Below, in pieces: positions 1,405-28,517 of a stretch of DNA of 64,000 bases. Location of the stretch: NCBI RefSeq assembly GCF_052425735.1, contig NC_135762.1, positions 15,252,001-15,316,000 on the forward strand. The letters are read 5' to 3'. Under the pieces are notes generated by a model. That model saw only the letters and a list, made by a program, of their open reading frames with translations, made no database searches and was not told where the DNA came from. Within the stretch, counting starts at the first letter, position 1; every line of letters begins with the position of its first letter. The stretch is from Oculina patagonica (Eukaryota). Position numbers and translations under genes: made by a program.

Positions 1405-1485
1405 TTCCAAGAAAAAAATATGCATGAGGTCATAGTCTCGTTTAAGAAGTCAGATAACAAAGAGAAAGAGGTTGAAACCGAAAGT
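1405..1485. promoter_or_regulatory. Putative bidirectional promoter elements between P1 and P2: GAS and ISRE-like sites
   Basis: TTCCAAGAA at 1405-1413 (TTCN3GAA) and GAAACCGAAAGT at 1474-1485 (GAAANNGAAA), in the ~510 bp between the divergent ATGs at 1125 and 1639. Confidence 0.5.
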
Positions 1486-1638
1486 AGAGTGCGAAGAAGG
1501 GAAACCCAACACAAACGAGCAGAACGTCTACGTAAATAACTGGAGATATTCTAATAGTTCATCGCTCCATAAGCACTACGATACGAAGAATTGCTAGTCT
1601 TCTTCTTAAAGGTTGTCACGACAAGAATAATTTCGAAG

Positions 1639-1878
1639 ATGTCTTCTAACCCGCAACGCATTCAAGAACACCTCGAGAACAGAGGAGGCAGCTCTGAAGC
1701 GCTGGTGTTTGATCCTGCCACAGGAAAGTTGATGGTGAAGCCACAACGAGAAGCCCAAAATTCCGCCGACAGGACCGTCATGTTGGACATGAACAAGAGT
1801 GGATCTGGAGGATTCTTCAACTTCGGCGCTTGCGACTGGCGACAGACAAGTGATAGAGACTATGTTCTGAATTTATGA
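1639..1878 (+). CDS. Small 'FF-tail' family protein P2 (79 aa)
   Basis: ATG at 1639: MSSNPQRIQEHLENRGGSSEALVFDPATGKLMV...DRTVMLDMNKSGSGGFFNFG...; clear similarity to P3-P5. Confidence 0.8.
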   Translation: MSSNPQRIQEHLENRGGSSEALVFDPATGKLMVKPQREAQNSADRTVMLDMNKSGSGGFFNFGACDWRQTSDRDYVLNL

Positions 1879-2975
1879 ACACGACAATGAGTTAAATCAA
1901 TGCAGCGCAATGAAGAACTTTGCTACCTTTAAATCTCTAGCTGATAGGAACAGGCAGCGGACAGTTGTTGCAAAATTTGTTTTAGTTATCTGACAATTTG
2001 CTTAGAGTTACTCAGTCTACTGTAGAATAGTGACTCAGTATCAGGTGGCATCAGTACATACTTGTTATATTCAAATGTTTATAGCTCAGTTGGGATGTGT
2101 CCTGGCGAATGATAGTTCCCTTCCATAAACGTTAAAATTGTAAATGTATGTTTAAACTGAAATACATAATTTCTTGGCTTGTATTCGGGTCAGTATATAT
2201 ATTTTCTAAAATTTTAAGCACGCCATTTTGCACGCTTGGAAGTAGTCTTTTGTATTGAGCCATATTGATATTCTAGGAAATGTGGTGAATTATTTCAGAA
2301 TACAGTAAATATAAACCTTAGCATTGTCCACCCGGTTAATTAGTTTTTTTTTTATTGCTGGCTGTCGTTGCATTATTTTTTTGATGAAATCTCGGGAACA
2401 AAATAAAATATATGCTACTTGTCACCTTTCACCTGTTTGCTGGGGAGCCCCTATCATTATTTGTTTCCGAGAAATAAGCACTTCCGGTGGCTTTTATTAG
2501 TGGCATTGTTGTGGTTTTTTTTTTTTTTTTGGGGAAAATAATTTTTTTTTTTTTTTTTTTTTGGTCTTTTTTTTTTTTTCAGTTTCGACTTGGGAAAGAT
2601 CACGACATTCAATTGTCACGAAAGCATGACAGCAAACATGACGCGAGGGTTGAGGGTTGATATAAATACATGGGGACTAAAAGAACCCTTTTCGGCAAAA
2701 ACGAAATCATTTTATTCAAGGCTGTTTACCGCTTTCGTTGCACGTTATTTTCGTTACCTGCTTAGATTTGTTACAATCATTGAACGATACTGCCAATGTC
2801 TGTGTTTCGATTAAAATCTATATGACCACTTTATTAGGTATTTATACTAAGTAAAGATGAAATACTTAAGAAAGAACCAGACAGATTCTGATACATTGCA
2901 TACATCGATTATTCAATTGTCTTTTACTAACAATAATGCAACTTAGAAATGCTTTGCTGACAGTCAAAAACTCAT

Positions 2976-4268
2976 TTATTTCCCTGGAGACGAGAAAAAT
3001 TCGACATTTTCTGCAGTGGCCTCCATATCTTGGCATGTCTTGCAGTCAGATTTTCTTTCGCTCATCATTGGATACCACCTAAGAATTCCAGGCTTGTCGA
3101 ACCTATGAAAGCCGTCTGGTGGGTATCCAGCGTACTGCTGCTCTCTGCGGTTGGCCCACATGTAATAGGGAGCCACCAGATCCTTCTCCAACGGCGCCAG
3201 TGCGCTGTCCTTACCTCGGCACAGCTCTACCAGGGCTAACTTCACCAGCATGTTGCCAATGGGAATGATGTCAGACGAAAGCCCAACCTGAATCGTGGCC
3301 GTCACTTCGTCGTCTCCAACATAAGGAGGATTAGCCTCGCGAGCTTGACGGAAGGAAGACATCTCTTCCGCGCTGGCTTCCATCGCCGCATCAGCGTAGA
3401 TGCACGAGAAGCATGGGCCATCTTTTGGTCTAACTCGCAGCACTTCTCCCCCTGCAGCTCTAACGGCGCACTTTCCGTAGAAGGTGGGGATGCCCAGCTC
3501 TATGGACAATGTGTTGATGTTGAGTCTGCTTCTTATGTTATCGGTCGCAGCCATGATAACGTCGCATCCTTTGAGAATTCTTCTGGCGTCGTCTAAATTG
3601 TTGATGTTGGTGTTGTGAATCTCTACCTCAGCAAATGGGTTCTTGTCTAGGATGCGGTCTCGCATAACATTCGTCTTCAGACGCCCTAGATCGCTTAGCC
3701 CACAAATATGGCGGATGATGTTATGCAGCTCAATCCGATCGAAGTCGACCAATACAAACTTGCCAACTCCGGCCTTGGCCAGCTCTATTGCTACGTGGGA
3801 GCCGCCACTTCCAAGCCCAACCACTGCAACTTTTCGCTCCTCCAACAGACTCGACTCGAGTATGCCATGACTGCGTGAGTAAAGCTGGGATCTTCGTGGT
3901 TGGCGCAGGACAGCCGCTTGCTCTATGGGTTCAGTTGACTTCGGCCGCACACAAACTCTGACATGGTCGTCTTCAGAAACCAGGATTGCAATTTGTGGCT
4001 CATCGAGGGGTGGGAGATTGGATATTAGAGTAGAGGCAATTTTCAGAACCTCTGTACACGGAGGTAGCTCTTTAAAGACCTTGAAAACGACTCGCTTTTC
4101 TGGTTTACCCGGAGCGGCGCTGTATTTAACCCGGACGTGGATTGTGTCACAGTCGTCAAACGCTGTCACGGAAAAGCGTTTCTCACCGGCTTCTTCGTTT
4201 TTGAGGACATCAGTAAAATTAGGTTGCAAGAAACAAACAACTTTACGATTGTCTTCTTCTTCGCCCAT
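2976..4268 (-). CDS. ThiF/MoeB/E1-like adenylyltransferase (430 aa) with an unassigned N-terminal ~125-aa domain
   Basis: Arg-finger LYSR, Rossmann VAVVGLGSGG, DFDRIELHNIIRH, GRLK, ATDN and two Zn-binding CxxC pairs (CFSC, CKTC). Intronless. Confidence 0.92.
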   Translation of the reverse strand: MGEEEDNRKVVCFLQPNFTDVLKNEEAGEKRFSVTAFDDCDTIHVRVKYSAAPGKPEKRVVFKVFKELPPCTEVLKIASTLISNLPPLDEPQIAILVSEDDHVRVCVRPKSTEPIEQAAVLRQPRRSQLYSRSHGILESSLLEERKVAVVGLGSGGSHVAIELAKAGVGKFVLVDFDRIELHNIIRHICGLSDLGRLKTNVMRDRILDKNPFAEVEIHNTNINNLDDARRILKGCDVIMAATDNIRSRLNINTLSIELGIPTFYGKCAVRAAGGEVLRVRPKDGPCFSCIYADAAMEASAEEMSSFRQAREANPPYVGDDEVTATIQVGLSSDIIPIGNMLVKLALVELCRGKDSALAPLEKDLVAPYYMWANRREQQYAGYPPDGFHRFDKPGILRWYPMMSERKSDCKTCQDMEATAENVEFFSSPGK

Positions 4269-4315
4269 CGTATTTAGTTCCTGGTTCTTCTGATCGAACT
4301 AAAATCACAAATGTT

Positions 4316-4746
4316 GAAATTGAAATAAATCGATACCATCATTCTTAGAATTTCCATCCATCTTTTGATTGGATAATTTCGTTTCGGTGACGAAACTGCA
4401 ATAAATATAAGCCTCTTTTTCCTGGAATTTTATTGCCTGTTGAGATGCTAAACAACAGATCAAATTATACAGCTGATGTCAATCTGGTGTTTAGCGTTTT
4501 CAAAGACACAAGAAGCAAGAACGCGCTCACCTTAAAATTGTTTATTTGATGATCTGTTTAGCTTGCCTTCTTGTTACATACTATAAAACAGATCACAGTT
4601 TACTGATAGCACTGAAATTAAAATCATCTTGTTACGGATCAAAAATTATTTATTGGAAACTGAAATAGAAAATGAAACAAGGGAAAACACCGTCCCGTCA
4701 CGCTACAGCAGCTGTGAGTCGGAATGTCTTCCGCTTATTCTGAGAA
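4316..4746. promoter_or_regulatory. GAS/ISRE-like cluster upstream of the E1-like gene
   Basis: GAAATTGAAA 4316-4325, TTCTTAGAA 4342-4350, TTTCGTTTC 4377-4385, TTCCTGGAA 4419-4427, GGAAACTGAAA 4655-4665, TTCTGAGAA 4738-4746. Confidence 0.5.
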
Positions 4747-6060
4747 TTCCTTCTGTACTGATTGAGCATGCTCCAGTTTGTACGTTTGTACGTGGACTCT
4801 GGGAACGAGATTGCGTTTGTATATATGCTGAAATCTGGTGTTACGATACTTGGATAACGGCAATGAACTACAGTATTTTACAAAACTTGAATTATTACTT
4901 GTTGCTCAAAAACTGTTTCAAAGTTGCATTCAACAGTACGAATTATAAATTGCATTCGACAGTTATTTTCTTCTACTTGAAATGCTCAACATTACCTAGA
5001 ATGCTTTGTCCCCGAAGGTGTCGAGGACAGAGCTGAATTGATGGATTTATAACGAGCATGCACCCTTGCCGCTTGATTATGAACACATAAATTATTGCAA
5101 TCAACAAGGACGCGAGATGTGTCACAGCATTTAAATGGTGAGCCCCTCTCGGAGGTTTTTAGGGTACAAGGGAAAATGGCCTTGAAGAATTGGGAACACG
5201 GGAACAAAACCTGTCTTTCTGATAATTTTGAAAACCGGGATCTGAAAAATCGGCAAAATACTTCTAAGGAACAATACATCACAAGGGAATATCTTTGGGG
5301 AACGTTCGTCGGCTAGCTTCATTTCCAACGACATCAAAAAAATTGTCAACGTAGAATGAAACGGGCAGTTACAAAGACTCTTTCCTGGTTTATTGTGATA
5401 GTGCATCCAATCTGAAAAAGGTTGAAAAACTTAACTAAAAAACTTAACCCTTTCAAGTAACGTTTATCTCTAATTTGAAATAACAAGAAGCCACTCAATG
5501 ATTATGGTCTGCAATCAATACGCAGTAGTGATTTCCCAAGGACATTCATCTTAACAGCTAAGCATAACATCACTGTGGGAATGAAAAAGAAATAAGAAAA
5601 TGTTAAAAACGCACTGTTTTAAGAGACTCCTGTTTCAGGAAACACCCTGCATGTACGCATAATTTGACACGCTTTTCTAGCTACATTACAAGATTAATTG
5701 CTTACAAGAGGTTAATTTCCAAGAAAATCGATCAGGAAGTAATTGTAAAAAGTCTTTCTGACATGACCCTGGCAACAGCAGAACACATCAACAACAGAGG
5801 GTAGCAACGGGTTGGAACTGCAATGATAGACAGCTTAATTTTACAGAGTTCTTGTGAAATATAAAATATTCGCTCGACAAGTTTCTTGGTGGTAGTATTG
5901 AAAGTGGAGGTTCAAAGTTGTACTACAGTACGAGTTCCCGGACTGTGTTGTCCGAGTGTCCATCGAGTCCAAACACTTTAGCTTTTAAAAAATTTAGTAC
6001 AAGCTAATGTTCCAGAGTTACTTTGCCTCAGACGATCCCTGTGATCTCAGCTTGTCACGT

Positions 6061-6270
6061 TCAGCACACGCAAACGAAAAATCCTCCTCCATCACGCTTG
6101 TTCATAGCTGTGACAACCTCTCGTCCTGGCCTGATTCGAGCCTGTACTTTGTTCATTACCTCAAGCTTCCCGGTTTCAGGGTTAAAGACCAATGCTTCTT
6201 GTCGACTACCGCCACTTTCAAAAAAATTGGTTACTGCACCCTGCCTAGGACGGGATGGAGCTGAACCCAT
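6061..6270 (-). CDS. Small 'FF-tail' family protein P3 (69 aa, MGSAPS N-myristoylation motif)
   Basis: MGSAPS...EALVFNPETGKLEV...REVVTAMNKRDGGGFFVCVC*. Confidence 0.8.
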   Translation of the reverse strand: MGSAPSRPRQGAVTNFFESGGSRQEALVFNPETGKLEVMNKVQARIRPGREVVTAMNKRDGGGFFVCVC

Positions 6271-6810
6271 GCTTCAATTCAGGACGTCATCAACCGTGGT
6301 CAAAGTAATACATAGGTGATGTTTGCATTGGTATAGCCGTTTATCGAAGTTTGTTTTATGCATATTTACCGCATGTATAATTTGAATTGACACTTATTTG
6401 CTTAAACGAGGTCATTTTCTGAGAAAATCAGGAAGACCTCTTAAAGCGTCTAAATCCGACAAGAGCTACTGAAAAGATTTCAACAGCAAGAAATGGAAAC
6501 CTTGAAATATTAGATCATATCAAACCATATTGATTCACGTCACTAATAAAATGTTTCAATATAAACACTCCCAGGAAAAAAACTAAAATCTCTATGTACA
6601 GTTGTTGTCTTTTTTTTTTCAAAATTCTTGCATAACACTCACCGGACACAAATGCAAGTTAACGCACACGGTTTATCGCCTATATGCTTTAAAGAAAGTT
6701 AGATATTGTGCGTTTTAAACAAAGGTGAACACTGAAAATCTCATTCAAATGTACTTTTGGTACGTCAATCTCCGTGTTTCATCTAACACGAATAGCGGAA
6801 TTGCTGAAAA

Positions 6811-7107
6811 TTATCTTACAAAGAATCCTCCACTTCCAGGTTTGTTTACGTCCAAGACGACGTGACGACCTGGCCTCGTATCTTCCTTTCTTACTATTTC
6901 AAGTCTTCCTGAGGCCGAATTGAAGACCATCTCTTCCATTGCATTGCCACCATTTTCAAAAAACCTTTCCATCTTAGTAGGCTGTTCCTGGGGAGTAGCC
7001 GGGTACGACGAACCTGCTCTTGGTTCTTTTGGGATCTCCGGGGCAATCCGTGGACTTGGTTGAATGATCCTACTCGGAGGTCTTGAAACTGATGAACATG
7101 AACCCAT
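6811..7107 (-). CDS. Small 'FF-tail' family protein P4 (98 aa, MGSCSS start)
   Basis: MGSCSS, Pro-rich linker, EEMVFNSASGRLEI...RHVVLDVNKPGSGGFFVR*. Confidence 0.8.
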   Translation of the reverse strand: MGSCSSVSRPPSRIIQPSPRIAPEIPKEPRAGSSYPATPQEQPTKMERFFENGGNAMEEMVFNSASGRLEIVRKEDTRPGRHVVLDVNKPGSGGFFVR

Positions 7108-8056: not shown

Positions 8057-8278
8057 TCAGCTTGTCATGTTCAGGACAAAGCGAAAGAATCCCCCTCCGT
8101 CAGGACTGTTCATAGCTGTGACAACCTCTCGTCCTGGCCTGCCATGAGCCTCTGCTTTGTTCGTTACCTCCAGCTTTCCAGTTTCTGAATTAAAGACCAG
8201 CTCTTCTTTTCGATTACCGCCACTTTCCAGAAATTTTGCTACTTCACTTGGTCTCGGACGTGATGGAGCGGAACCCAT
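8057..8278 (-). CDS. Small 'FF-tail' family protein P5 (73 aa, paralog of P3)
   Basis: MGSAPS...EELVFNSETGKLEV...AMNSPDGGGFFRFVLNMTS*. Flanks are homologous to the P3 flanks. Confidence 0.8.
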   Translation of the reverse strand: MGSAPSRPRPSEVAKFLESGGNRKEELVFNSETGKLEVTNKAEAHGRPGREVVTAMNSPDGGGFFRFVLNMTS

Positions 8279-8498
8279 GTTTCAATTCAGGATGTGAGTT
8301 TTGCTGTGGTATAGCCGTTTATTAAAGTTAATTTCATGCATACTTCCTGTACTGCATAGTTTGGATTGACACTTATTTGCTTAAACGAGGTCATTTTCTG
8401 AGAAAATCAGGAAGCCCTCTTAAGACGTCTAGATGTGACAAGAGCTACTACTGTAAAAATGGAAGAAATGGAAACTGTGAAATATTATATTACATATA

Positions 8499-10608: not shown

Positions 10609-10791
10609 TCAAAGGTATAGCAGAATTGGGAAATATTGTCTGAAAAAGAATCCTCCACTTCCAGGTTTGTTTACGTCCAAGACGACGTGACGACCTGGCC
10701 TCGTATCTTCCTTTCTTACTATTTCAAGTCTTCCTGAGGCCGAATTGAAGACCATCTCTTCCATTGCATTGCCACCACTTTCAATAATAAC

Positions 10792-10837
<46 letters not shown>

Positions 10838-11080
10838 TAATAATAATAATAATAATAAAAAAATAATAACTGTTTTATTGGAAGAGCTTCCACATAGTGG
10901 CTCTTCGTCTTCCAAATAAACTAAATTTACAAAAAGCCTTTCCATCTTAGTAGGCTGTGTCTGGGGAGTATCCGGGTACGACGAACCTGCTCTTGGTTCT
11001 TTTGGGATCTCCGGGGCAATCCGTGGACTTGGTTGAATGATCCTTCTCAGAGGTCTTGAAATTGATGAACATGAACCCAT
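10609..11080 (-). pseudogene. P6: copy of P4 disrupted by a ~150-bp insertion
   Basis: Near-identical to P4 on both sides of an insertion at ~10783-10930. The 5' half is MGSCSS...KMERLF and the 3' half is ESGGNAMEEMVFN...GGFFFRQ. Confidence 0.8.
10783..10930 (-). mobile_element. Short retroelement 3'-end with (TTA)n tail
   Basis: On the minus strand AATAAA is followed by a long (TTA)n tract; the block is absent from P4. Confidence 0.55.
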
Positions 11081-12254: not shown

Positions 12255-12679
12255 GTTTCAATTCAGGACGTCATCAACCGAAGGCGAAGTACTGCGTAGT
12301 ACTGCGTTCTTTATGCATACTTCCTGTATGCACTGTTCGGATTGACACTACTTATTTGCTTAGACGGGGTCATTTACTGAGAAAATCAGGAAGTCCCCTT
12401 AAGGCGTCTAGAAATGGGAATATTACATATACTAACCATATTGCTACACGTCACTAATAGTTCAATAAAACACACTCCATGTAAAGTGTCTTAATAACCA
12501 TGTTTTGTGTTTTTTGTTCTTTGAAAGGTCTTGTACTTGTATAACACACACACACACAGCTTATCGCCTATTTGCTGAGATGAAAGTTAGATAATGTACA
12601 TTCAAAACAAAGTGGGGGTACTGGAAATTTGATTCGATTGTACTTTTGATACGTAAATCCCCGTGTTTCATCCCACACG

Positions 12680-15364: not shown

Positions 15365-15746
15365 GAGGAGATAATAAGAAGACCCATTTTTTTACGTCAG
15401 ATAAATTAAAGAGGAAAGTCTTGTTTCATTTTTGCAACTGAGAACCAATTTTAAAAAGGGGTTTGCGGAAATTGCTCATGGAACGTGTACGTAAACAAAG
15501 AAAATCTTTTTGGCAATTTGCATCTCATTTGGTGTTAACTTGGCGTGACAAGCCTGGTTTCTCAAAACAGTCATTAAATGAAAGAATGTCAAACACAAAT
15601 CCATGTCAAGCTTCCTTATAGCCAATCCTCCAAAGCATGGAAAGATAAATAGCTCGCAACAAAGGTAACAGAAAATATATATAGGTTTCAAACAAAAAAA
15701 AAAGGTTTATTTTTCATGAGTCAGTGATGTAAATAAGACACTAAAA

Positions 15747-15773
15747 GGTCATTTTCTGAGAAATTTAGGAAGT
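15747..15773. promoter_or_regulatory. Shared GGTCATTTTCTGAGAAA (GAS) plus AGGAAG (ETS-like) module
   Basis: The same 17-mer occurs at ~6410, ~8389 and 16721, with a one-mismatch copy at ~12368. It lies upstream of JAB1 and of P3, P5 and P7. Confidence 0.55.
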
Positions 15774-17001
15774 CTTTTCTGGTCAGTCAAACACGACAAC
15801 CAGAAAAAAACAACAGGACAACAACAGAGTATCGACTCAGTTTTGACATTTAATGTTATTAAAGTTTTAGACTAGTTCAGTATTATTCTTCTCTGAGTTA
15901 CATAGCTTCGAATACATATCTTAATGTCCAATGAACTTGGTAAATATAGATTACAGAGTACTAAACGCTGTGATTTATGTCCTAAAACTAATACTGTATT
16001 TATTCGAAGTTTAAATAAGTGCATAAATATATAGTATTGTTTCCAGAGTTATCGAAACACTGGGAGTAGTTTAATTTGGGAGATCTACTACTCGAATAAG
16101 CTGGGAACTCGAACCATAGCCGAACGATATAGTTTGCTTGTTTGCCTTTTTAATCACTGCGCTTTTCCTGCTTCTCAACATGCACATTTACTAGTCAGTA
16201 ACATCATAATTCGTTTAAAACTCGAAAAAAGATTGTATAATAATTTCTAAAGTAAAAGGCTTGGATCGATATATAAAGTTCGCATACAGTTGCGATCTCT
16301 GTAAAAATATTTACACGTACATAGATTTTGTCCATTTTGACAAGGTCCCTCAGTAAAGATCATATCAGATTCTTATGAGACACGCTTAAGTGAATAAAAG
16401 CTAAGTTAAAAAATTAACCTACGATCGCTTCAAGAGAATTTTTGTTAGTTGTCACTCTATCTCCTCTCCTCTCTTAATATGTTGCACCGGCTTTACATTC
16501 ACTTTTGTGAATCCTTATAGTTCCTTGAGTACATCGCTATTAAAACGAGTAGAGGAGAAGAAAAGATCATTAATTGTTAGCTTTTTCAAAACCTCTTTAT
16601 CCTGATAGTACACCCTAATTTTGGATTTTTAGCACATATTTCTATCAGGTTTCCAAGACGTTTCCGCCGAATAAGTTCAACAATTTGCATAACAGGATTT
16701 AAGTCAACCCCCTAAAAGGAGGTCATTTTCTGAGAAAACTAAAAAGTCGCTAAACAATGCATGCATTGGCAACGGTGTGATAGCCTCAAATTTGTTTCAG
16801 TGCATTCTACACGAATTTATTTTTGCTATAAATATTCTTTACTTCTTTTGTTTTCGTTTTCATCGTTTTGCCATCTAACGGTTTGGCAACTCTGCTCTGT
16901 CAGCTAGATGTATCTGTAGGTCGACAGTCGCTCATTCAAGCTCTGTTCCTGTACAAGTCGATTATATATTTGTAAGATTGATTGGCTAAAACTACGATTC
17001 T

Positions 17002-17808
17002 TTAAAGTATTTCACAAACGGGGCAGCGCTTTCTTATTTCATAAACAATTCGAAACAGCCTACCCCCTTCATTTTCACTCGTAGCCCCTTGCTCCGGGTC
17101 GTGTTTGCGACGCTTCTTCGGTTTAATATCCACCACAGCTTCTTCTTTATGTTTGGGTGGCCTCCTCCGATTATCACTCATCACAGGTCGCTCGCTCAGC
17201 ATAGACGTCCCTGTTGTTACTTCCAAAGACTTCACGTCTTCATCCCTGTTCAGACACTCTGCTCCTTTTTGTAAAACGCTCAGGCATTTTGGACGGAAGG
17301 GGCTTTCATTCGGCAAGAGGTGGAACTTTCCTTGCAACACTTGTAACTTCTGGTTGGTTCCCTTTACAAATTCAAACAGAAAGCATCCAACGCTAACAGC
17401 TTCGCATCCATAACTTTGTGTCTCAATGTTGGCAATAAACAAAAGAAAACGGCTTAAGCCATATTTAGGCATGTTTGTCCACACTGTTCGTTCATCTCCG
17501 CCACTTGGTCGCTTAAGACCGATTCTGTGGTGGGAATGCCACTCGCCTATATGGCAAACACCTTCCTTGCCTGTCAAATTGGAGCCAGCTTTCTCTAGGT
17601 ACTCCACGTCTTGGTAGAACGAGTGGGTTGCTCGCTGACAGTTTTTACCAGGACCCAATACAAGCTGAATTACTGCCCTACGATCGTCAGACCACAAACC
17701 GAACAAATCTCCGCCGGTTTCCAGGCTTTGGTTCTTCAAGACCCAGGCACATATTTCTTTGTATTCGTTGGCATAAATAGCCACTGTAAATTCCCTTTTT
17801 GTCGACAT
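17002..17808 (-). CDS. JAB/MPN+ (JAMM) metalloprotease 2, C-terminal polybasic region and CaaX (CEIL)
   Basis: Close paralog of JAB1 with ETGGDLFG and GEWHSHHRIGLKRPSGGD. Tail includes KPKKRRK and ends RKRCPVCEIL*. Confidence 0.9.
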   Translation of the reverse strand: MSTKREFTVAIYANEYKEICAWVLKNQSLETGGDLFGLWSDDRRAVIQLVLGPGKNCQRATHSFYQDVEYLEKAGSNLTGKEGVCHIGEWHSHHRIGLKRPSGGDERTVWTNMPKYGLSRFLLFIANIETQSYGCEAVSVGCFLFEFVKGTNQKLQVLQGKFHLLPNESPFRPKCLSVLQKGAECLNRDEDVKSLEVTTGTSMLSERPVMSDNRRRPPKHKEEAVVDIKPKKRRKHDPEQGATSENEGGRLFRIVYEIRKRCPVCEIL

Positions 17809-17880
17809 AGATCCGCTAAGACTTTCAAAGGTTTTTCTAAAAATTCTGACTTTGAACTTATGTTGATACTATCATGTCAA

Positions 17881-17987
17881 TTTCAATTTCGTAGGAAATT
17901 GAAAACACATGCATCGGAAGCTTTTGACCGTCTATAACTTTTCATGTTTTGGCCTGGTGTGATGCTGAGATATGCGATTTCTTGGAA
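17881..17987. promoter_or_regulatory. ISRE-like and GAS sites upstream of JAB2
   Basis: TTTCAATTTC 17881-17890, GGAAATTGAAA 17894-17904, TTCTTGGAA 17979-17987. Confidence 0.5.
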
Positions 17988-19181
17988 ATCGGACAATCTA
18001 ATCATGTCAAAACACCACAGCCGGATGAGTACTTGAATTTGCATAGTAATCATCCATTGAATTACACATGCAGCGCAACGTCAAAATTCTACCGCCTAAT
18101 ATACATATTCTTTAATGTCACACATTAAATAATGTCATTGCTATAAATTTCGAAATGGAGCCAATTTACTCATTGAAGTGTTGATAGCATAGCCATAACT
18201 GAACCAACTAGAGGCTGATAGATTAACGTTGTATTTATTTCTCGCTTTGTTATTTCGCTTTGTTTTGCAGAAATTCTTAGAAATGTTTTGGTTGATCATC
18301 ACACTCGATCAACGGGACTTGACCTCTAGGTTTCGTGGAATTCTGAGAAAAACAGGATGTTGTTATGCAAATGACATTCTTCCATGTCAATCAAGGCCTC
18401 GGCTGTGGAGTGAAAGCTGTATCCGAACCTTGTACCGTGTATTTCGTCCCTAGATGAAAATTTTATTTTTCTTCCAGTTTCGTCCCGGAAGTGGTTACTG
18501 AACAAAAAAAGGAAATAAACATACGGGAGGTCGCGAAGGGAGTAGATGGGGAAGCGTGGGGAGAGGAGGGGAGGGCAGGGGAGGGGAGGGGAGGGGAGAA
18601 GTGTAATGGGTTAAATTCTTCTGAAATTTACTTCCGGGTATCAAAAATTAGCAAGTTTAGTATTACTTATTCCCCTCTGAACAGATGACGTTTTTTTTTA
18701 TATTACTCGCAAAGGTGACAGATGTACAGGCGTATATCCCTCTTTCATTTTACTTAACTTATATAATGTTGCTAAGGACCAATTGCCTTAGCCGGGAAAA
18801 CTTGCCAACGTAAAAATATACAAATATATACAAATAACACAGAAATTGCTACTTCATGTAAGCAACGAATCAGCAAACTGTAACCTAGTTGTTTTTTTCA
18901 TTCCCTGCAATCTACAGTTAAAACTTTAATTCATCCACGCAGTTTTGCGATTAACTGGCACCTATAATAAGGCATGTAAGGCTGTTTAGTCTTGTTTGGA
19001 GATTGAACAGTCAAAACATTTGAAACCCGCTGTGTAAATATAAAAAATTGCTTTAGTTAACTTGTTGTTGTTTATTCTGCCGACAAAATACCGATGACTC
19101 CTTCCATAGAGCAGTCGACCCAAAATTTAGTAGTTACGGTGATAAAAAAATCTTGATCCATTGACTTCATTATTAAGCATG

Positions 19182-19727
19182 TCACCGTCGAAAGAAGCTA
19201 GAGCTGTCTGATCCACTTGGGTTCGTTATAATTTTTACCTTCGTCGTGTTTCTATAGGCTTCTCGTCTGGTCATTACCTCCATTTTTCCTGTTGAAAGGA
19301 CCATAACTAAGACAAAGCCTGGATATCGCTCAGGATCTTTCGAGAACTCGCTCACTGACGGTTGACGGTAACTATGGGACGCAACGTTTCGAGTGGGGCC
19401 GTCGTTTAACTTTCGAGAAGAGTCTACGTTGTAGCTTCTAGGAGATGCTGTATTCAAGTCTCGAGGAGGGACAGTGTTAAAGTTTAGATCGGGAACGGCA
19501 TTTAAGTTTCCATTTGGGACTGAGGTGAAGTTTCCAGGAGGCATGGGGAAAAGGTTTCCGTGTGGAGGAGCGTAAAGGTTCCCTGGCCATGGAGGAAAGG
19601 CGGCTAAGTTTGCAGGATGGACAGGATTGAAGCCTCCAGATGGTACAATGATGAAGTTTCCATAAGGGTCGAACATAAAGTTTCCATAAGGTGTAGCGAT
19701 TATGGGTCCAGAAGGGACAGTCCCCAT
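19182..19727 (-). CDS. FF-tail family protein P8 (181 aa) with N-terminal Pro/Gly/Asn octapeptide repeats
   Basis: MGTVPS start, about 12 degenerate PxGN[FL]xxx repeats, then FVLVMVLSTGKMEVMTRREA...KIITNPSGSDSSSFFRR*. Confidence 0.75.
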   Translation of the reverse strand: MGTVPSGPIIATPYGNFMFDPYGNFIIVPSGGFNPVHPANLAAFPPWPGNLYAPPHGNLFPMPPGNFTSVPNGNLNAVPDLNFNTVPPRDLNTASPRSYNVDSSRKLNDGPTRNVASHSYRQPSVSEFSKDPERYPGFVLVMVLSTGKMEVMTRREAYRNTTKVKIITNPSGSDSSSFFRR

Positions 19728-22581: not shown

Positions 22582-22614
22582 TTTCAGTTTCCAAGAAATC
22601 AGTATTTCGTAGAA
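22582..22614. promoter_or_regulatory. Overlapping ISRE and GAS sites upstream of the E2-like gene
   Basis: TTTCAGTTTCC 22582-22592 overlaps TTCCAAGAA 22589-22597; TTCGTAGAA at 22606-22614. Confidence 0.55.
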
Positions 22615-22769: not shown

Positions 22770-23219
22770 ATGAGTTGGAGTTCGCAGCAACGAACAAGAC
22801 TCGGGTTGGAGAAAGATATTTTAGACAGCAAGTTAAAGAACGTGTCGTGGATTAATCCCACATCGGCTGGAAACACCCGAGTCGAATGGCGAGTGAACAC
22901 AAACAACGACAACAGCTACACGCTTCGTGTCTACCTCTCGGCGAATTTTCCAAATGAATGCCCGATACTGGTTGTAAGCTCTCCTTCATCTCCTCTGAGG
23001 AAAAAGAATGGATCTCTTCTCGACAGTACGGACGGGAGTGATCATGTTTATGGAAGCATCGATGGCTTGACACAAATTTGCCACTTCAATAAAAGCAAGT
23101 GGACGAGCGAAAATACCGTCTACCAAGTCCTTATGAAAGGGCGCATCTGGCTGGAAGCTTACGAAATTCATCGGCGTACTGGGGAATATCTGGAGAAATA
23201 TCTGGCGCACATGCAGTGA
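22770..23219 (+). CDS. Divergent E2/UBC-fold conjugating enzyme (149 aa)
   Basis: N-terminal helix RLGLEKDIL, LRVYLSANFPNECPILVV (FPxxxP), HVYGSIDGLTQICH (Cys at the UBC active-site position) and WTSENTVYQVL (conserved Trp). Intronless. Confidence 0.8.
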   Translation: MSWSSQQRTRLGLEKDILDSKLKNVSWINPTSAGNTRVEWRVNTNNDNSYTLRVYLSANFPNECPILVVSSPSSPLRKKNGSLLDSTDGSDHVYGSIDGLTQICHFNKSKWTSENTVYQVLMKGRIWLEAYEIHRRTGEYLEKYLAHMQ

Positions 23220-25011
23220 ATTAAGACTGAACGATCATCCAGCTGATTTTGGTGGATAAAAATATAGTTTTGCAAGCAGTAGTTCCATCACGAAGGACAT
23301 TTAATAATGTAAGGAGACATTGACTTATAGAACTGAGTAACAAGTTATTTCTGATCATGTCCGATGTGAGTGTAGTACGAAATTGAGGTTGTTGTAGTAA
23401 TTATTTAACTTTTAAAAGTAATGTTCTGGATGTCGGCAGTGGTAACCACAATGCCGTCACATCGAAATATGCGCCATTTATGATTTATTGGCAAGTGATT
23501 AAGAGCCTGCTTTTTTAGTCTAGATGTGCTTACGTATTTAGTAGTCAAAGTACTAAACGATGACCTAAATGGAAAATTTACATTTTCATCAAGTTGTATT
23601 TTAAGGTCTTTTAACTTGGTACCTGCATATCTTGCTTTAAAGCATAAGGCAAAAGAGAAAAATTGTACTAACAATTAAATTTCCGTGTCATACAAATTTA
23701 TAACATCGCAATAAATCAAAGCATTTTCTCGGAAGGTGGTTGTTTTTCTCTACATTTTTCTCAGAAGACTTTGAAGGGTCACTTTAACCTCACTGCATGG
23801 GGCAGGCTTGTAACGCAAAAACATGAATTCCAATCAATAATATTTCTTATTGGCAGGAAAAAAGGAGAAATGGTTTCAAATGCGACTACTATAATGTTTT
23901 CTTTTTATAAACCTTTGGGCAGTGGCACAAGATTGCTACATTCTCTGTCCCCTAATAGTGGCATCAAGCTTGATAAAGCTGAATCAATCATACTTTTTAT
24001 CTGATCAACAGCATTTGGTACTAGCATGTTCCAAATTCAAGGAAAATTCTAGCAGTGTATAATTTTATAGTTTTGTTTACGGATAGATCACGCACTTGAA
24101 TTGCTATAGCCTTTTGTTTATGTGAAAACAATTTACGATTTTCTTTCTTGGAAATACGCGAGTTTTCAACTACATTAGCACCATATGTTTGATGAGTTTT
24201 TTTCACACGCCGGATTCTTTCATTCAGGAGTTTGCCTGTAAGACAAGAGCGCATACGCAAAATACGACATCTATTGAGCTTAATCGGCCTTAGAACACAC
24301 TCGAGATCAATAAATTCTGCATTTACTAGCGAATACATTTTACTGTTAAATGAATACATTTTTGTGGTGACAACGCGCATAGGTCAATAACTGAATTCGG
24401 GAATGTGACCCTTTCTTTATAGTTTACAACTAAATCGTTCCAACATGGAAAGTATAAGTTACTCCTCCCCACGCAGGTTTGTTAACAACTAGTCAGTACT
24501 TCAGTTTATGGATATTAACGGCTCGTCTTAGAAAAGTTATGGATAAAATATTTACAATATAATTCTCAAGGGGGTATCATAGTTTTCTTGTAAGACACAC
24601 AACATACCTTTCGGTTCGTTTTAGAGAAATTGCTCGCGTTGCTTACTACCAGGCAGTTGATAATAATACAATTTTACAATCGAACTTGCAATCCTCGCAG
24701 TTTCGGACAGCTATAAAGTAATTAGTTGTGTCGCCTCGACTAATCGCAAATTATAATAACAAGTGAGTGACTACAAAAAACAAAGACAACTTCCTGAATT
24801 GGAACATCACGGCAAATACAGGCGGCCAGTCAGTGTAAGGAAGAGCGGCTGATAATGGAGCTAACGTTTAAAATGTACAATCCTCCTCGATCCTGTCTGT
24901 CGAGCCAACTTTGCCCATCTCTGCGATCTCAATTTCTTGCAGACCAAACATCTTCCAGGAACGGTAATAAAAACTCCAAATCCGTCGGACTCCGCAAGGG
25001 CAAGAGCATTG

Positions 25012-25618
25012 TCATCGTCTAAAGAAGCTAGAACTGCCTGATCTGGATTAACTTGGGGTCGAAACAATTTTCACTTTGTTTGCATTTCTCTGAGCTTCTC
25101 GTCTGCTCATGACCTCCATCTTTACCATAGAAAGGATCATAACTAAGACAAAGCCCGGGTATTGCTTGGGATTTTTAGAAAACTCCTTCACTGATGGATA
25201 GGAGTGCTTCTGGGACACAGCGTTAACGTTTCGAGAAGGGGCCGCGTTTAAGTTTCGTCGAGGGGTGGCATTCAATTTTCGAGGAGGGTCAACGTTGTTG
25301 TTTCGTGGAGGGCTGAGGTTATACCTTCTAGAAGGGACAACGTTAATGTTACCAGGAAATACGGCGTTTACTATAAAGTTTTGTTGAGAGATCGAGATAA
25401 AGCTATTCCAGGAGCCACGCCGTCAGGGTTTCCTAGAGGCGCGGGGAAGACGTTTTCAAGAGGAACGGCGAAGCTGTTCACAGGAGGAACGGCAGTGAAG
25501 TTTTCGGGTGCCGCGACTTTCAAGCTTTCAAGAGGGTGACAGCAAAGTGTCCACATGGATGGGCGAAATAGTTTCCAGAAGGAACGGCGATAAAGTTACC
25601 GGACGGGACGGCCCACAT
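25012..25618 (-). pseudogene. P9: degenerate paralog of P8
   Basis: Starts MWAVPSGNFIAVPSGN (Gly2 lost), has frameshifts in the repeat region and ends KVKIVSTPS*SRSGSSSFFRR* with a premature TAA at 25048-25050. Confidence 0.75.
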
Positions 25619-26780
25619 TTTCTAATATAACGACGTTTCACAAGTGAAATTGTTACCAAACGACAAAGACCTAAACTTTCCTCAGGTAACAGATTCAGCT
25701 AACATTGCTGAGTACTTTCCGATGTATATTTATCTCTACTGGTCAGCGGTACGAAAGTAACTGAGTCTACAGTCTCCATGATCGATCAGCGGTACATGTA
25801 ATCTCGTTCCCATTGCCCGCGCCCCACTTGACCAGCGGTGGCGCTTCCTGACCCCTTGTTGATGGGGACGCGGGCTCTGGAAACGAAATTACGGTACGTG
25901 TAGAAATCTGCTGGTCCCGCGAATAAAACATCTGCTCTTGACTAAAAATTTGATTGAGGAAGTATTATTTGTCTAATTATTAACAGAAAAGAAAATTCAT
26001 TACAAGGAAAAATTAAAGGGATGATGACATGAAAGTTTTGCTTTGAACTCAGAGCTTATCAATAATTGCTTACTAACTTATATAACCACAACATAGCAAT
26101 GATTACAATAAGTTTTCTTTCGTTCTAACGTTGAGTTATCAGCTGGTTAGTCATTTCGATATCATTGAATGATTTATGACTAATCTACAGAGCAAAGGAT
26201 TTTCGATGATACATTTGTGATCAATTTTATTTAACACCATTATTTAACTGAAATGGTAACGGGAGTCGTGCATGGTTTTTGCACTCACTTCGACATGGAA
26301 ATGAACTTGGATAATTTTATCAGTTTTTGTATTTTCGAAAAGTTACAAATGATCCTAAAAGTGCCACGTCTAAATAATTCTTTAGGTTATAGTGGTCCCT
26401 GAAAATTCATTAAAAGAACATATAATTTGCTACACGAGAAGTTTTACACTGTTTAATTTTTGTCAAATTTGAGCTCTGACCATGTTAGAAACCGAAAGTT
26501 CACGGCAGTCCTGCTAGTTTGAAATTAGGTTACTGCAAAGTTTACTTGTGCATTACGTTGAATATTGTATTTGTATTTTTTTTATACTTCCGTTGTATGA
26601 CTTAAAAATATGCAACTATATGGCATATTATAAGTTGCATTGCTAGCTAGGTGAGTTCGAACACTGAACTTCAGTGATTGAAACCGAAAGTACAAAAAGC
26701 TGAGTCAGTATTCCTCTTAATGCAGGTAACCAACAAACATCTCTTCTCAGTGAAAACCAGACAACCACAGTTCTGTCTTG

Positions 26781-27212
26781 CTAGCCGAGCCAGATTAGTC
26801 CTTCCCTCTGATATCGATGGCGATCCGCTTTATTGCAGATTCCAAGTTGTCCACTTGTAACGTCGAAATATAAAAGCCTTTCGGTTGAACTTCCTTGCAA
26901 ATATTCCAAGATCGTGTCTTCGTTAGACGTTTGCCGGAAGAACCCAGAGTTATCTGAACGGTCGGATTCACTTGAACTAGAAACGATTTTAACCTGTGCC
27001 CCGCTAGTGCGCGCTTCTAGTCTAGTCATAATCTCCATTTTTCCCGTAGCAAGGACCAAGACCAACACGAAGCCGGGATAACGATCTGGGTTGTTTGAGA
27101 ACTCGCTTACGGATGGACGGCTGCTCCGTTGAGAAGTTCTACTGTTTTGAGGACGAACGACTTCGGCGTTTAAATGTCGAGGAACGCGGCGTGTACTTTC
27201 TTCTGCCCCCAT
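26781..27212 (-). CDS. FF-tail family protein P10 (143 aa) with two tandem core domains
   Basis: ATG at 27212 (MGAEES). Core 1 is FVLVLVLATGKMEI...SDNSGFFRQ; core 2 is TILEYLQGSSTERLLYFDVTSGQLGI.... Confidence 0.7.
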   Translation of the reverse strand: MGAEESTRRVPRHLNAEVVRPQNSRTSQRSSRPSVSEFSNNPDRYPGFVLVLVLATGKMEIMTRLEARTSGAQVKIVSSSSESDRSDNSGFFRQTSNEDTILEYLQGSSTERLLYFDVTSGQLGICNKADRHRYQREGLIWLG

Positions 27213-28517
27213 TTCAGTTATCAATCGAAGAATTCGGATATAAGGCTCTCAAAATTTCTTCAGTGGTATTGTTGATAAATAGAGCTGACTTGCTTCTGAA
27301 GATGGATACCGAAAGATGATATGATGACATAATAACATGCAAATTCCTGGAACTGTCTTCTTCGCTGTTGTTGGTCAGCGGAAGTGGTAATCGCTTTTCC
27401 GGGAATCGTTGAAAAGAGGAAGTTGCTTGTCCCCAGTTCTACCGATGAGACAATTAATTTACGAGGGATGAAATATCTCTCTTTTCTCTGCTTGCTTTCC
27501 ATTGATGTTAGCAACAGTTCTCTCTCCACAGACGACTGTGAACAAATCAGAAGCGGAAGTGAGTCGGGTCCCAGTTTGAGTTCCGGTAACACTTGTTAAA
27601 GTCGCGGGGATCACCTTCGGCTCATCATTATATTTATTTAAAGCGTATGCACGAATGGCAACGACTGACATCGACACATTTCAAAATATTCATGACTGGA
27701 TAAAAATGTGAGTGCTTGCGCTTGATTTGATGTGTTCGCGTATGGTGCGTGTTGTGTTCGTGTAATGGTGGGAAGGGGTGTGGCACGGATTGTGATCGCT
27801 TTTAAATGTTACAATGTCAGAGCTCTTTTCATTCAAAACTCAATATAAAGTGTATCTTGCATCTTTCGTTTATATTTCGTACTAGTCTTTTTTAACTTCC
27901 CGGTTGTATTCTCTTTTGTGGTTCAAGCGAGGATTCCTCGCTTGAAGGAGGAAGTTAAACACAGGTGAAATGCACTTAAAACACACGAAATTTTAATCCC
28001 TCAATTGGCAAGAAATTCAAAGTATCCCTTCGTTCCATTAATTTTCCTTTATCCAGCAATTTTAAGTAAGTAGTAAAACATGACCTGTTTGAAGCCAATC
28101 AAAATGCGTAGCCATCAGTGTCCTATCCTATACCCTGCCATAAAAAAAGCGAAAAAAAAAAATAAACAGGAATAAACAGGAAATCACAATTTAGGTAAGC
28201 TGTCCATCACAACATACGTGCCATGGCAACATCTCGAGCTCGTCGGATTGTTGGTAGCTATAGTGTATTGAAAGGGCAACATATAAATCGCGTTAATTTT
28301 TGTTTATTTTGATAACCTGACTGCTCGAATAGGTCATATGAATCTCTTCGTCCCACCGTCCTTCTAGTTATTCCAGCATTTTTCTGAGAGCTTGCTTTAG
28401 TCTAACAGTTCTTTTTATTTTTCTTTCTTTCAAAAATGATGATTCCAGTAACGCAAGGCACCTTTAAGCAGCAAGATTGTCACACTAGACGTGCCTGACT
28501 CGTCCCAGTCGTCTCTA

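Follow-up and report, generated by a model that had tools for sequence, protein, structure and literature searches.

Target genes of STAT proteins, such as vertebrate CISH/SOCS and the Stat92E targets of Drosophila, carry GAS elements, at multiple or tandem sites, with the consensus TTCN3GAA (TTCYNRGAA being the STAT5 optimum), and the core of the IRF-binding ISRE is GAAANNGAAA. In the vertebrate ISG15 system (ISG15, UBA7, UBE2L6 and USP18) all components are co-induced through shared promoter elements. The window analysed here, a 64,000-nucleotide stretch of Oculina patagonica DNA, holds a cluster of E1, E2, JAB and small-protein genes whose enzymes resemble bacterial anti-phage modules (CBASS Cap2-Cap3 and Bil-type operons) at the level of E1, E2 and JAB domains in PADLOC profiles, with matches below the cut-offs to the NCBIfam 6A-MBL cap2_3 and Cap3 models; unlike those modules, the coral genes are separate, have their own promoters and reside in an animal genome.

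The coral sites share with GAS elements a nine-base palindrome with strict 3-nt spacing, a Y-N-R core and T/A-rich flanks, and several lie within a few hundred bases of a gene start, often paired 15-50 nt apart. They differ in that STAT binding is putative, the targets are bacterial-type enzymes, and some sites are part of a longer conserved composite that also contains AGGTCA and AGGAAG. To our knowledge, the coral host has no interferon and no established JAK, a canonical JAK not being established for cnidarians in general. Similarly, GAAA-N2-GAAA direct repeats occur near the palindromes with the spacing of the ISRE/IRF-E of interferon-stimulated genes, including four consecutive GAAA units at 4656-4677; IRF binding is putative, however, and the repeats are less universal than the palindrome, Desmophyllum showing no enrichment of them (2 vs 2.2) and Actinostola a weak one (4 vs 2.5). 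As in the ISG15 system, activating, conjugating and deconjugating enzymes and candidate small partners carry the same inducible-type elements, although the coral enzymes are of bacterial ThiF, E2 and JAB type rather than UBA7 or USP18, the genes lie together in a physical cluster, and the dominant element is GAS-type and not ISRE.

Genes of the cluster

The E1 (a ThiF-type adenylating enzyme) is encoded by an intronless ORF of 430 aa (2976..4268, minus strand; Pfam ThiF 1.5e-35, PADLOC E1-E2 1.2e-31). Its orthologs across Anthozoa are 93-56% identical, followed by cyanobacterial proteins (46-48%), which are its nearest non-animal relatives. JAB1, a Prok-JAB/JAMM-type isopeptidase (14687..15364, minus strand), was recognised by PADLOC JAB (6.4e-17), Pfam Prok-JAB (3.7e-4) and a visible HSHH...SGGD motif, and similarity identified JAB2 (17002..17808, minus strand) as its paralog (72% identity). 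The E2-like protein (22770..23219, plus strand; PADLOC E2 3.7e-6) has orthologs that adjoin E1 in loci L004, L005, L012 and L013. Introns are present in the cluster genes of the octocoral.

The small proteins comprise G1 (763..1125, minus strand), of a ...G[FW]F superfamily, and the A and B types. Small protein A at 1639..1875 (plus strand) is divergent from G1 and has a C-terminal ...SGGFF plus a tail. Its copies, all on the minus strand, lie at 6064..6270 (MGSAPS start, GGGFF... end), 6814..7107 (without a strict site within 600 nt upstream), 8060..8278 (a recent duplicate of the 6064-6270 gene, promoter included) and 10612..11080 (interrupted by a simple repeat; a recent duplicate of 6814-7107). 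Small protein B, also on the minus strand, is found at 19182..19727 (MGTVPSG start, SSSFF end; only a relaxed TTCN3GAA, at -242), at 26781..27215 (two core repeats) and as a fragment without a start codon at 25051..25422 (pseudogene or exon; no upstream site). Family searches with the small proteins returned zero matches, and a structure model of moderate confidence gave no fold match, with no ubiquitin fold seen. The description of the cluster as ISG15-like in a preceding sequence-only reading is thus unsupported on the modifier side.

Enrichment and specificity of the elements

Across the whole window TTCYNRGAA occurs 27 times, compared with 6.39 +/- 2.33 in dinucleotide shuffles. Positions 1-28000 contain 23 of these sites (3.1 expected from shuffles, z 11.4), with 24 counted up to 34372, and 28-64 kb contains four (3.4 expected). 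The earlier estimate by eye of about 20 sites in the first 34 kb agrees with these counts, and all twelve coordinates that it listed are exact matches. Real non-cluster DNA carries four sites in 51.3 kb (0.078 per kb), making the cluster 10.5-fold denser (Poisson p 3e-16). The excess is specific to the arrangement: within 1-28000, TTC-N3-GAA is found 35 times against 13.4 (z 5.9), while all other spacings from 0 to 8, including the heat-shock-factor spacing N2, and the reverse arrangement GAA-Nk-TTC remain at background level, and the control core TTCRNYGAA shows no excess (4 vs 3.3). With duplicates and coding sequence masked, TTC-N3-GAA was the best non-low-complexity dyad among 14,266 tested (31 vs 8.2, z 8.0). 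KappaB sites are not concentrated in the cluster.

Such an excess could be devoid of regulatory meaning if it stemmed from base composition, constraints on coding sequence, duplication of segments or a small mobile element; the sites at 6417 and 8396 are indeed recent duplicates, and a 17-nt composite is common to six sites. All other site flanks are unrelated, however: flank comparison identified that single duplicate pair, to which 5717 is weakly related, so that about 21 sites are independent. Of the 23 sites, 22 remain when duplicates and coding sequence are masked, and none lies inside a conserved CDS. The same-composition controls (the RNY core, the other spacings and the reverse order) show no excess, and eight further anthozoan loci repeat the excess of TTCYNRGAA although their non-coding DNA can no longer be aligned. 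This explanation is already contradicted and we regard it as highly improbable; the earlier contention that duplication alone does not account for the sites holds.

Of the 23 sites, 13 fall in the 600-nt zones upstream of conserved ATGs, which together make up 26% of the sequence (p 0.002), and the genes behind them are the non-homologous E1, E2, JAB1, JAB2 and five small-protein genes, as had been proposed. At least one strict site is present at 9/13 genes, in keeping with the claim that most components are preceded by such motifs; four genes are without one, and ten sites are more than 600 nt from any recognised ATG.

The IRF-type core GAAANNGAAA (GAAA-N2-GAAA) matches 25 times against 8.95 +/- 2.69. 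When the spacing of GAAA repeats was varied, N2 gave 17 vs 3.7 (z 7.1), seven of the 17 having the extended form GAAANNGAAAS, and N6 was the sole other elevated spacing, being elevated also in the control region. Both elements thus match the STAT (TTCN3GAA and STAT5-type TTCYNRGAA) and IRF consensus sites named in the sequence-only reading, diagnostic spacings included. Its ISRE-type sites are present, those at 17881 and 22582 being on the minus strand, but two of their coordinates (4655 and 17894) were off by one and are corrected to 4656 and 17895. Additionally, 27 of 66 ISRE-type clusters have a palindrome no more than 100 nt away, with 8.3 expected.

Arrangement of sites at individual genes

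Upstream of E1 (minus strand), two conserved blocks are separated by poorly conserved sequence. The proximal block (4282..4427) presents, in gene orientation, TTCCAGGAA at 4419 (-151), a CCAATCA box at 4366, TTCTAAGAA at 4342 (-74) and the ISRE-type TTTCAATTTC at 4316 (-48); its TTCTAAGAA and CCAATCA are invariant in an alignment of five species and conserved in Desmophyllum too, and distances of about -80 and -155 recur in L001, L002, L004 and L007. The distal block (4656..4746) combines TTCTGAGAA at 4738 (-470), where substitutions are confined to degenerate positions, an adjoining ETS-like AGCGGAAGA and three overlapping GAAANNGAAA at 4656-4677. As a donor-like AAG|GTGAGC and an acceptor-like CAG with its pyrimidine tract are found upstream of the ATG, the proximal block may be intronic rather than a promoter. 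An ORF at 4587-5033, considered as a further gene preceded by sites, was rejected; its protein is not conserved and its DNA is E1 upstream sequence. The 514-nt divergent promoter of G1 and small protein A contains TTCCAAGAA at 1405..1413 (-280 and -226, respectively) and GAAACCGAAA at 1474..1483 (plus strand). The interval in which the 3' ends of E1 and small protein A converge holds TTCTAGGAA (2271..2279), not conserved in L006, and TTCCGAGAA (2465..2473), conserved there; neither is assigned to a gene.

The 17-nt composite, in which six sites share an AGGTCA half-site and AGGAAG, is on the plus strand throughout. A degenerate copy of the composite GGTCATTTTCYNRGAAA (5710..5726) holds site 5717 with no downstream gene recognised. 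GGTCATTTTCTGAGAAA (6410..6426) contains site 6417, at -147 relative to the small A gene at 6270, and is followed by AGGAAG; its duplicate (8389..8405) contains site 8396, at -118 relative to the small A gene at 8278, and GAAATGGAAA occurs near each (6490 and 8465). A decayed composite, TTACTGAGAA (12368..12384), stands beside a decayed small A copy. The composites at 15747..15763 (site 15754, -390 of JAB1) and 16721..16737 (site 16728, -1364 of JAB1, between it and the JAB2 3' end) have exact counterparts at the corresponding places in L007 (2518 and 1597).

JAB promoters preserve the order distal site, GTCACGC, proximal site; the GTCACGC element of JAB1 is at 15543..15549 (minus strand), and TCAC.C between the two sites is invariant in 8/8 aligned promoters. 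At JAB2, TTCTTGGAA (17979..17987, -171) aligns with the distal site of other JAB promoters and is lost in L007 (TTCTTGAAA), and an inverted GAAATTGAAA pair (17881..17904, -73 and -87) stands where those promoters have the proximal palindrome; further upstream are TTCTTAGAA (18274..18282, -466) and TTCTGAGAA (18341..18349, -533), the latter overlapping a relaxed TTCN3GAA at 18332. The E2 promoter module (22582..22614, plus strand) consists of an ISRE-type TTTCAGTTTC overlapping TTCCAAGAA (22589, -173), then a relaxed TTCGTAGAA (22606), a tandem pair also present in Desmophyllum (TTCGGAGAA then TTCCTAGAA). Two sites 32 nt apart, TTCTCGGAA and TTCTCAGAA (23726..23766), lie about 500 nt beyond the E2 stop, followed by TTCTTGGAA (24145..24153) and TTCCAGGAA (24953..24961); none of these four is assigned to a gene. 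The small protein B gene at 26781..27215 is preceded (27344..27405) by TTCCTGGAA (27344, -129) and TTCCGGGAA (27397, -182), with GCGGAAGT and an ETS-like GAGGAAGT alongside.

Conservation and candidate readers

TTCYNRGAA is likewise in excess at the orthologous clusters of other anthozoans: L001-L004 have 15 sites each where about 2.5 are expected, L007 has 12 (1.5 expected), Actinostola 19 (2.7) and Dendronephthya 17 (2.1). Most loci show no excess of the control core TTCRNYGAA, although Actinostola L012 has 6 against 2.9. GAA-N3-TTC stays at background except in L003 (23 vs 10.6), and the non-cluster flanks of L003 and L004 contain zero sites. Upstream sites are present at 26 of 32 E1, E2 and JAB genes in the orthologous clusters of other stony corals, an anemone and an octocoral. 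The consensus is retained in 9/11 site comparisons, whereas perfect conservation is seen in only 8-19% of the neighbouring 9-mers; changes between species fall at the Y, N and R positions, and flanks diverge while positions are kept. Co-regulation of the cluster through shared cis-elements is thus well founded on sequence grounds, given the specific enrichment, the exclusion of duplication, the unrelated genes and the conservation of position and number across Anthozoa. As read from sequence, the motifs amount to a conserved cis-regulatory code by which a conjugation cluster of bacterial derivation is co-regulated.

This code would comprise TTCYNRGAA palindromes, GAAA-N2-GAAA and a few accessory elements (the CCAAT box of E1, the GTCACGC of the JABs and ETS-like GGAAG cores), and would place every transcription unit of the anthozoan E1/E2/JAB/small-protein cluster under common control. 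The bacterial-type enzymes would form one operon in bacteria, and in the animal each gene has a promoter of its own; the same sites in each promoter would allow co-expression, shared transcription-factor sites having presumably replaced the operon. The palindrome is most likely read by a dimer of an anthozoan, STAT5-like STAT and the GAAA repeats by IRF-family proteins, which together would give stimulus-dependent, coordinated transcription, probably with an innate immune trigger. We assign a probability of roughly 0.55 to this reading, by which motifs conserved in front of most genes would mediate a coordinated, possibly immune-triggered switching-on. In Nematostella a single STAT and five IRFs are present, several of them induced by 2'3'-cGAMP (PMC8713801), and homologs of IRF2, STAT5A, ELF1 and ELK1 are up in poly(I:C)-activated immune cells (PMC13319465).

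Nine-base motifs can be common to unrelated factors, and in bilaterians BCL6/Ken-type zinc-finger repressors compete for STAT-like sites. It is conceivable, though clearly less probable, that the motifs co-regulate the cluster but that the palindrome is read by another, possibly lineage-specific factor (e.g. a zinc-finger repressor of that type) in a programme tied, for instance, to stress, to the stage of development or to the state of symbiosis rather than to immune induction. All of the enrichment and conservation evidence fits this equally, and the AGGTCA and AGGAAG of the 17-nt composite at six sites hint at non-STAT partners. Additionally, the sponge cluster shows no TTCYNRGAA enrichment, indicating that the link between motif and system is not intrinsic. 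In Nematostella, moreover, 2'3'-cGAMP induction was not measurably reduced when nvSTAT or individual nvIRFs were partially knocked down (PMC8713801). Conversely, the restriction to N3 and to YNR and the flanking T/A correspond to STAT-dimer preferences, coupling to IRF-type repeats is typical of antiviral promoters, and the kinship of the enzymes to bacterial anti-phage E1/E2/JAB modules favours a defence role.

Less probable still is that the sites set constitutive, cell-type-restricted expression (e.g. in specialised immune, gland or cnidocyte lineages) and not acute induction. The CCAAT box and ETS-like cores do suggest a standing promoter, yet it is inducible genes that typically combine multiple and tandem STAT-type sites with ISRE-type repeats. 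The IRF-expressing basal programmes reported for immune cells of Stylophora and Nematostella would also accommodate constitutive expression (PMC13319465).

A JAB-like gene of roughly 480 aa lies off the left edge of the window. The site at 149..157 (TTCTAAGAA), conserved in L007 and L001, is probably part of its promoter, to which TTCTCAGAA at 206..214, conserved in L007, is also attributed; the orthologs of this gene, at 10347 in L007 and 14747 in L001, have three upstream sites.

Enrichment and placement of palindromic sites in the gene cluster

The first 28 kb of the window are filled by a mostly intronless gene cluster, which comprises a ThiF-type E1 gene (2976-4268, minus strand; Pfam 1.5e-35, PADLOC E1-E2 1.2e-31), an E2-like gene (22770-23219, plus strand; PADLOC E2 3.7e-6) and two Prok-JAB paralogs, JAB1 (14687-15364, minus strand; 6.4e-17 for the PADLOC JAB profile) and JAB2 (17002-17808, minus strand; also matching the PADLOC JAB profile), all NCBIfam matches of E1, E2 and JAB lying below the curated cut-offs. 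The genes are separate, occupy both strands with spacers of 0.5-5 kb, and lie amid caveolin genes and animal transposons. Also present are about nine copies of a single small-protein superfamily (763-1125, 1639-1875, 6064-6270, 6814-7107, 8060-8278, 10612-11080, 19182-19727, 25051-25422 and 26781-27215), characterised by a myristoylation-type N-terminus (MGxxxS or MG[ST/A]xxS), a core of approximately 45 aa (E.LVF[DN]xx[ST]GKLEV...DR.VV, or LVF[DN]xx[ST]GKLxV) and, in the C-terminal part, a conserved [SG]G[FW]F ahead of a variable tail. No family match was found for these proteins in Pfam, NCBIfam or PADLOC. A ubiquitin fold was not supported, as an AlphaFold2 model of moderate confidence (pLDDT 65.8) was not of the beta-grasp type, which constitutes weak negative evidence, and a Foldseek comparison of the model with the PDB gave no fold match (best E 1.4). 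The E1/E2/JAB enzymes may use these small proteins as substrates or modifiers.

The GAS-type palindrome TTCYNRGAA (strict site) occurs 27 times in the whole window against 6.4 expected, with 23 occurrences in 1-28000 (3.1 expected, z 11.4) and four in 28-64 kb (3.4 expected), the latter stretch serving as control DNA from the same genome. The site coordinates of the sequence-only reading proved exact to within one base for both motif types, and the enrichment that it had estimated by eye was confirmed by a cluster density 10.5 times that of real non-cluster DNA (51 kb only; Poisson p 3e-16). When spacings of 0-8 nt were assessed in both orientations, the excess was limited to TTC-N3-GAA (35 versus 13.4 in 1-28000), every other spacing (0-2, 4-8) and the reversed half-site order being at background level; it was furthermore limited to the Y-N-R core (RNY control, 4 versus 3.3). 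The extended consensus is c-a-T-T-TTCYNRGAA-A-t, the base at -1 being T in 16 of the 23 sites and that at +9 being A in 15. The ISRE-type repeat GAAA-N2-GAAA is likewise over-represented in the cluster (17 versus 3.7, z 7.1), the excess being specific to the N2 spacing, and of the 66 ISRE-type clusters counted in the window and eight other loci, 27 have a palindrome no more than 100 nt away (8.3 expected, p 7e-9).

Copying of a few sites by duplication or by a mobile element was considered as a source of the excess. Comparison of 60-nt flanks identified one duplicate pair (6417/8396) with a weak relative at 5717, and 22 of the 23 sites were left once coding sequence had been masked throughout, along with every later copy of a duplicate; TTC-N3-GAA then ranked top of 14,266 dyads (31 versus 8.2, z 8.0), setting aside the C-run dyads of a simple tract. 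This origin is thus ruled out, in agreement with the earlier claim that duplication alone does not explain the sites, and a coding-sequence artefact is equally ruled out as no site falls in conserved CDS. Heat-shock elements are excluded since TTC-N2-GAA and GAA-N2-TTC are at background. NF-kappaB sites, at 9 versus 4.5 in the whole window, are found within 1-28 kb at 2442 and 12389 alone and so are not concentrated in the cluster. The full CRE palindrome is not enriched, GTCACGC is only mildly over-represented overall, and a search for contiguous 6- and 7-mers enriched upstream returned no dominant extra motif, GCGGAAG recurring in four genes. ETS-like GGAAG cores are over-represented beside the palindromes.

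With genes defined by protein-level conservation with other species and their starts set at the first in-frame ATG, 13 of the 23 strict sites fall in the 600 nt preceding the ATG of a conserved gene, a zone that makes up 26% of the sequence (p 0.002). The sites were said to precede non-homologous genes, which is indeed the case: E1 has strict sites at -74, -151 and -470 nt from the ATG, E2 at -173 (with a relaxed TTCN3GAA site at -156), JAB1 at -390, JAB2 at -171, -466 and -533, and five small-protein genes between -118 and -280. Four genes have no strict site upstream, and a caveolin exon embedded in the cluster (20445-20795, minus strand) has no upstream site. An ORF at 4587-5033 was rejected as a site-preceded gene, its protein not being conserved and its sequence being E1 upstream DNA.

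Ten sites fall outside assigned promoters. Sites 149 and 206 match the promoter of a JAB-like gene of roughly 480 aa located just beyond the left edge of the window (promoter at window 92-224), and are conserved in L007 and L001, two of the E1-centred loci fetched from other assemblies. Site 2465 is kept in L006, another such locus, whereas site 2271 is not, and four sites at 23.7-25 kb have no assigned gene; tblastx found no genes hidden beside 2271, 2465, 5717, 16728 and 23726-24953. The JAB-like gene beyond the left edge lies downstream of E1 and is conserved, at 415-487 aa, in L001 (14747-16195), L002 (14755-16254), L003 (14198-15514) and L007 (10347-11786). In L003 it shows two JAB-like segments, and in every one of these loci two or three palindromes precede it.

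A 17-nt composite, GGTCATTTTCYNRGAAA, in which an AGGTCA half-site is joined to the palindrome with AGGAAG a few bases on, was observed at 5710-5726, 6410-6426, 8389-8405, 12368-12384, 15747-15763 and 16721-16737, and elsewhere at L007 1597 and 2518 and at L001 8750, the last upstream of a small gene. Sites 15754 and 16728 are exact copies of this composite, and the matching places in L007 carry it too. Unrelated genes, JAB1 as well as small-protein genes, have the composite upstream of them, and its orientation with respect to the gene does not vary.

Conservation of the sites across species

Orthologs of the cluster are present in annotated anthozoan assemblies, E1 identity ranging from 93 to 56% across Anthozoa (Desmophyllum, Actinostola and Dendronephthya), with 47% to the sponge Oscarella and 46-48% to cyanobacteria; a 'thif family protein' is already listed among the anthozoan genes gained from bacteria (PMC4878875). 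The E1 CDS of Dendronephthya (L013, 10007-11891) lies in three blocks and thus contains introns, which, judged from gene structure, would be consistent with long residence in animal genomes; stony-coral E1 is mostly a single ORF, the Desmophyllum E1 model being split.

Strict sites were enriched in the anthozoan loci, at 15 versus about 2.5 each in L001, L002, L003 and L004 (Desmophyllum), 12 versus 1.5 in L007, 7 versus 2.5 in L005, 19 versus 2.7 in L012 (the anemone Actinostola) and 17 versus 2.1 in L013 (the octocoral Dendronephthya), the RNY control being near background in most loci (6 versus 2.9 in L012). Palindromes were absent from the non-cluster flanks of L003 (GPCR side) and L004 (SNARE side). 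Of the 32 E1/E2/JAB genes in the eight anthozoan loci, 26 are preceded by a site at no more than 600 nt; in the sponge this applies to one of seven. In Oscarella lobularis (GCA_947507565.1), E1 and several E2 and JAB paralogs are clustered at 5298-19773 of L014; despite this gene content, L014 shows no palindrome excess (3 versus 2.5) and its cluster is enriched neither in TTCYNRGAA nor in GAAANNGAAA. Since this sponge cluster lacks motif enrichment, the cluster may be older than, or acquired separately from, its anthozoan regulatory code.

Alignments revealed site positions kept inside otherwise diverged DNA. The consensus was retained in nine of 11 site comparisons in alignable non-coding DNA, whereas only 8-19% of neighbouring 9-mers were perfectly conserved, and substitutions fell at degenerate positions, as at site 4738 (TTCTGAGAA to TTCTAAGAA to TTCCAAGAA) and site 4419 (TTCCTGGAA to TTCTTGGAA). 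In the JAB promoters a distal palindrome comes first, then an invariant GTCACGC and then a proximal palindrome, which two copies have exchanged for an ISRE-type inverted pair; the tandem pair of the E2 promoter is common to the window and Desmophyllum. The claim of co-regulation is strongly supported by these comparative data, and we consider it highly probable (about 0.9) that the sites are functional cis-regulatory elements linking the separate transcription units of the cluster.

The region upstream of E1 consistently shows a distal palindrome, then CCAATCA, the proximal TTCTAAGAA, an ISRE-type repeat and finally the ATG; TTCTAAGAA and CCAATCA are invariant in five species, and site distances of approximately -80, -155 and -420 recur among species. 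Two conserved blocks (4282-4427 and 4656-4746) each contain both motif types, including a GAAA-N2-GAAA kept beside the proximal palindrome, and are separated by poorly conserved DNA. An acceptor-like pyrimidine tract and CAG, the latter invariant in five species, lie about 30 nt before the ATG (window 4297, minus strand), and a donor-like AAG/GTGAGC lies about 250 nt upstream of E1 (window 4516, minus strand). These splice-like signals may delimit a 5'UTR intron; alternatively, the TCAGA, which follows the CCAAT box by about 70 nt, could act as an initiator. The short contigs from Logan and ENA that were checked for transcription starts proved to be genomic rather than transcript. Because a 5'UTR intron is possible, the proximal block may be either promoter or intronic enhancer.

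Candidate regulators and relation to known systems

The GAS element is TTCN3GAA, with TTCYNRGAA as the STAT5 optimum, and the GAAA-N2-GAAA companion repeats correspond to the IRF core. The description of the motifs as STAT and IRF consensus sites is therefore upheld, spacing and Y-N-R core being those of STAT dimers. The N3 spacing and core fit a STAT-type reading; heat-shock-factor spacing is excluded and kappaB is not concentrated in the cluster. On these motif features, binding by STAT (at TTCTGAGAA/TTCTAAGAA) and IRF (at GAAATTGAAA) would be somewhat favoured. ISRE-type enrichment is present in L001, L002, L003, L007 and L013, weak in L012 and L005, and absent from L004, the excess thus not being universal. 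STAT and IRF are the candidate factors, and for immune induction of the cluster the odds appear even.

That cnidarians encode the candidate factors agrees with Nematostella, which has a single STAT gene and several IRFs, some of them induced by 2'3'-cGAMP (PMC8713801). Partial knock-down of nvSTAT or single nvIRFs left the cGAMP response without measurable change and was uninformative, and NF-kappaB is the only factor tied to part of that response (PMC8713801). Homologs of IRF2, STAT5A, ELF1 and ELK1 are elevated in Nematostella immune cells activated with poly(I:C) (PMC13319465); among the entries listed in the supplements to that study, ThiF/JAB genes are housekeeping ones only, with no 'Prok-JAB' entry. 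Full-text searches of the accessible literature returned nothing relevant on coral ThiF expression or a cnidarian Cap2/Cap3-like system, and no paper describing the cluster or its regulation.

The term 'ISG15-like' applied by the sequence-only reading is reduced to an analogy, given that the small proteins show neither a ubiquitin fold nor a family match and that the enzymes are bacterial-type. Like the ISG15 system, the cluster has a dedicated E1, an E2-like protein and deconjugating enzymes (the two JABs), with promoter elements shared across the machinery as in vertebrate ISG15 co-induction. Unlike it, the enzymes are not UBA7, UBE2L6 and USP18, and GGFF with a variable tail closes the small proteins, in contrast to a ubiquitin-fold modifier with a Gly-Gly end; the cluster is not a member of the ISG15 system. 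The prokaryotic-type E1, E2 and JAB domains are shared with bacterial defence modules of the Cap2-Cap3 or Bil type, from which the cluster differs in not being an operon in a prokaryotic genome. Transcription-factor sites common to the genes seem to have taken the place of operon co-expression. The cluster illustrates how bacterial-origin genes, which bacteria transcribe as one operon, can stay co-regulated in an animal when each gains the same sites.

The cluster bears on how animals that lack interferon induce antiviral and antibacterial genes. Tentatively, anthozoans might run an interferon-independent STAT-plus-IRF induction, a functional counterpart of the ISGF3/GAS control of interferon-stimulated genes. 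Among its targets would be a domesticated bacterial anti-phage conjugation system whose operon was turned, one gene after another, into a regulon, with this wiring maintained since before the hexacoral/octocoral split. The cluster is a candidate inducible defence system of reef-building corals. Its short, conserved, mutation-ready promoters, such as the E1 upstream stretch of approximately 500 nt, which carries three palindromes and two ISRE-type elements as well as a CCAAT box, make the STAT/IRF hypothesis directly testable. If this reading is true, these promoters would be a first defined group of direct STAT/IRF targets from a cnidarian, and the ISG15 logic of coordinated modifier, conjugation and deconjugation induction would have arisen independently of ubiquitin-fold ISG15.

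Mobile elements and other features of the window

A Crypton-like tyrosine recombinase (9003-10150, minus strand; DUF3504 and Phage_integrase, with a QRICH1-type N-terminal part) lies between segments 6734-7484 and 10559-11449, which are 89-99% identical, an arrangement which points to a small-protein gene having been duplicated recently in association with the transposon. The 28-64 kb stretch contains caveolin-domain exons (33333-33710, plus strand, Pfam 1.9e-22; 62855-63055, plus strand), remnants of a Harbinger/PIF-type transposon at 36322-39179 (a Myb/SANT ORF and split DDE_Tnp_4 ORFs), a tRNA gene (55587-55659, Rfam 44.8 bits) and an uncharacterised small family. Further duplicated segments lie at approximately 29-31.5 kb and at 60-61 kb, and N runs, kept unchanged in the analysis, occupy 35003-35502 and 59425-59924. 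The small family has three copies (ORFs 44098-44544, 47495-47953 and 54647-55057), and a palindromic kappaB-like sequence, GGGGAACTCCC, occurs at 44796-44806 and 55310-55320, about 250 nt beyond ORFs of this family, where it is probably part of the duplicated unit.
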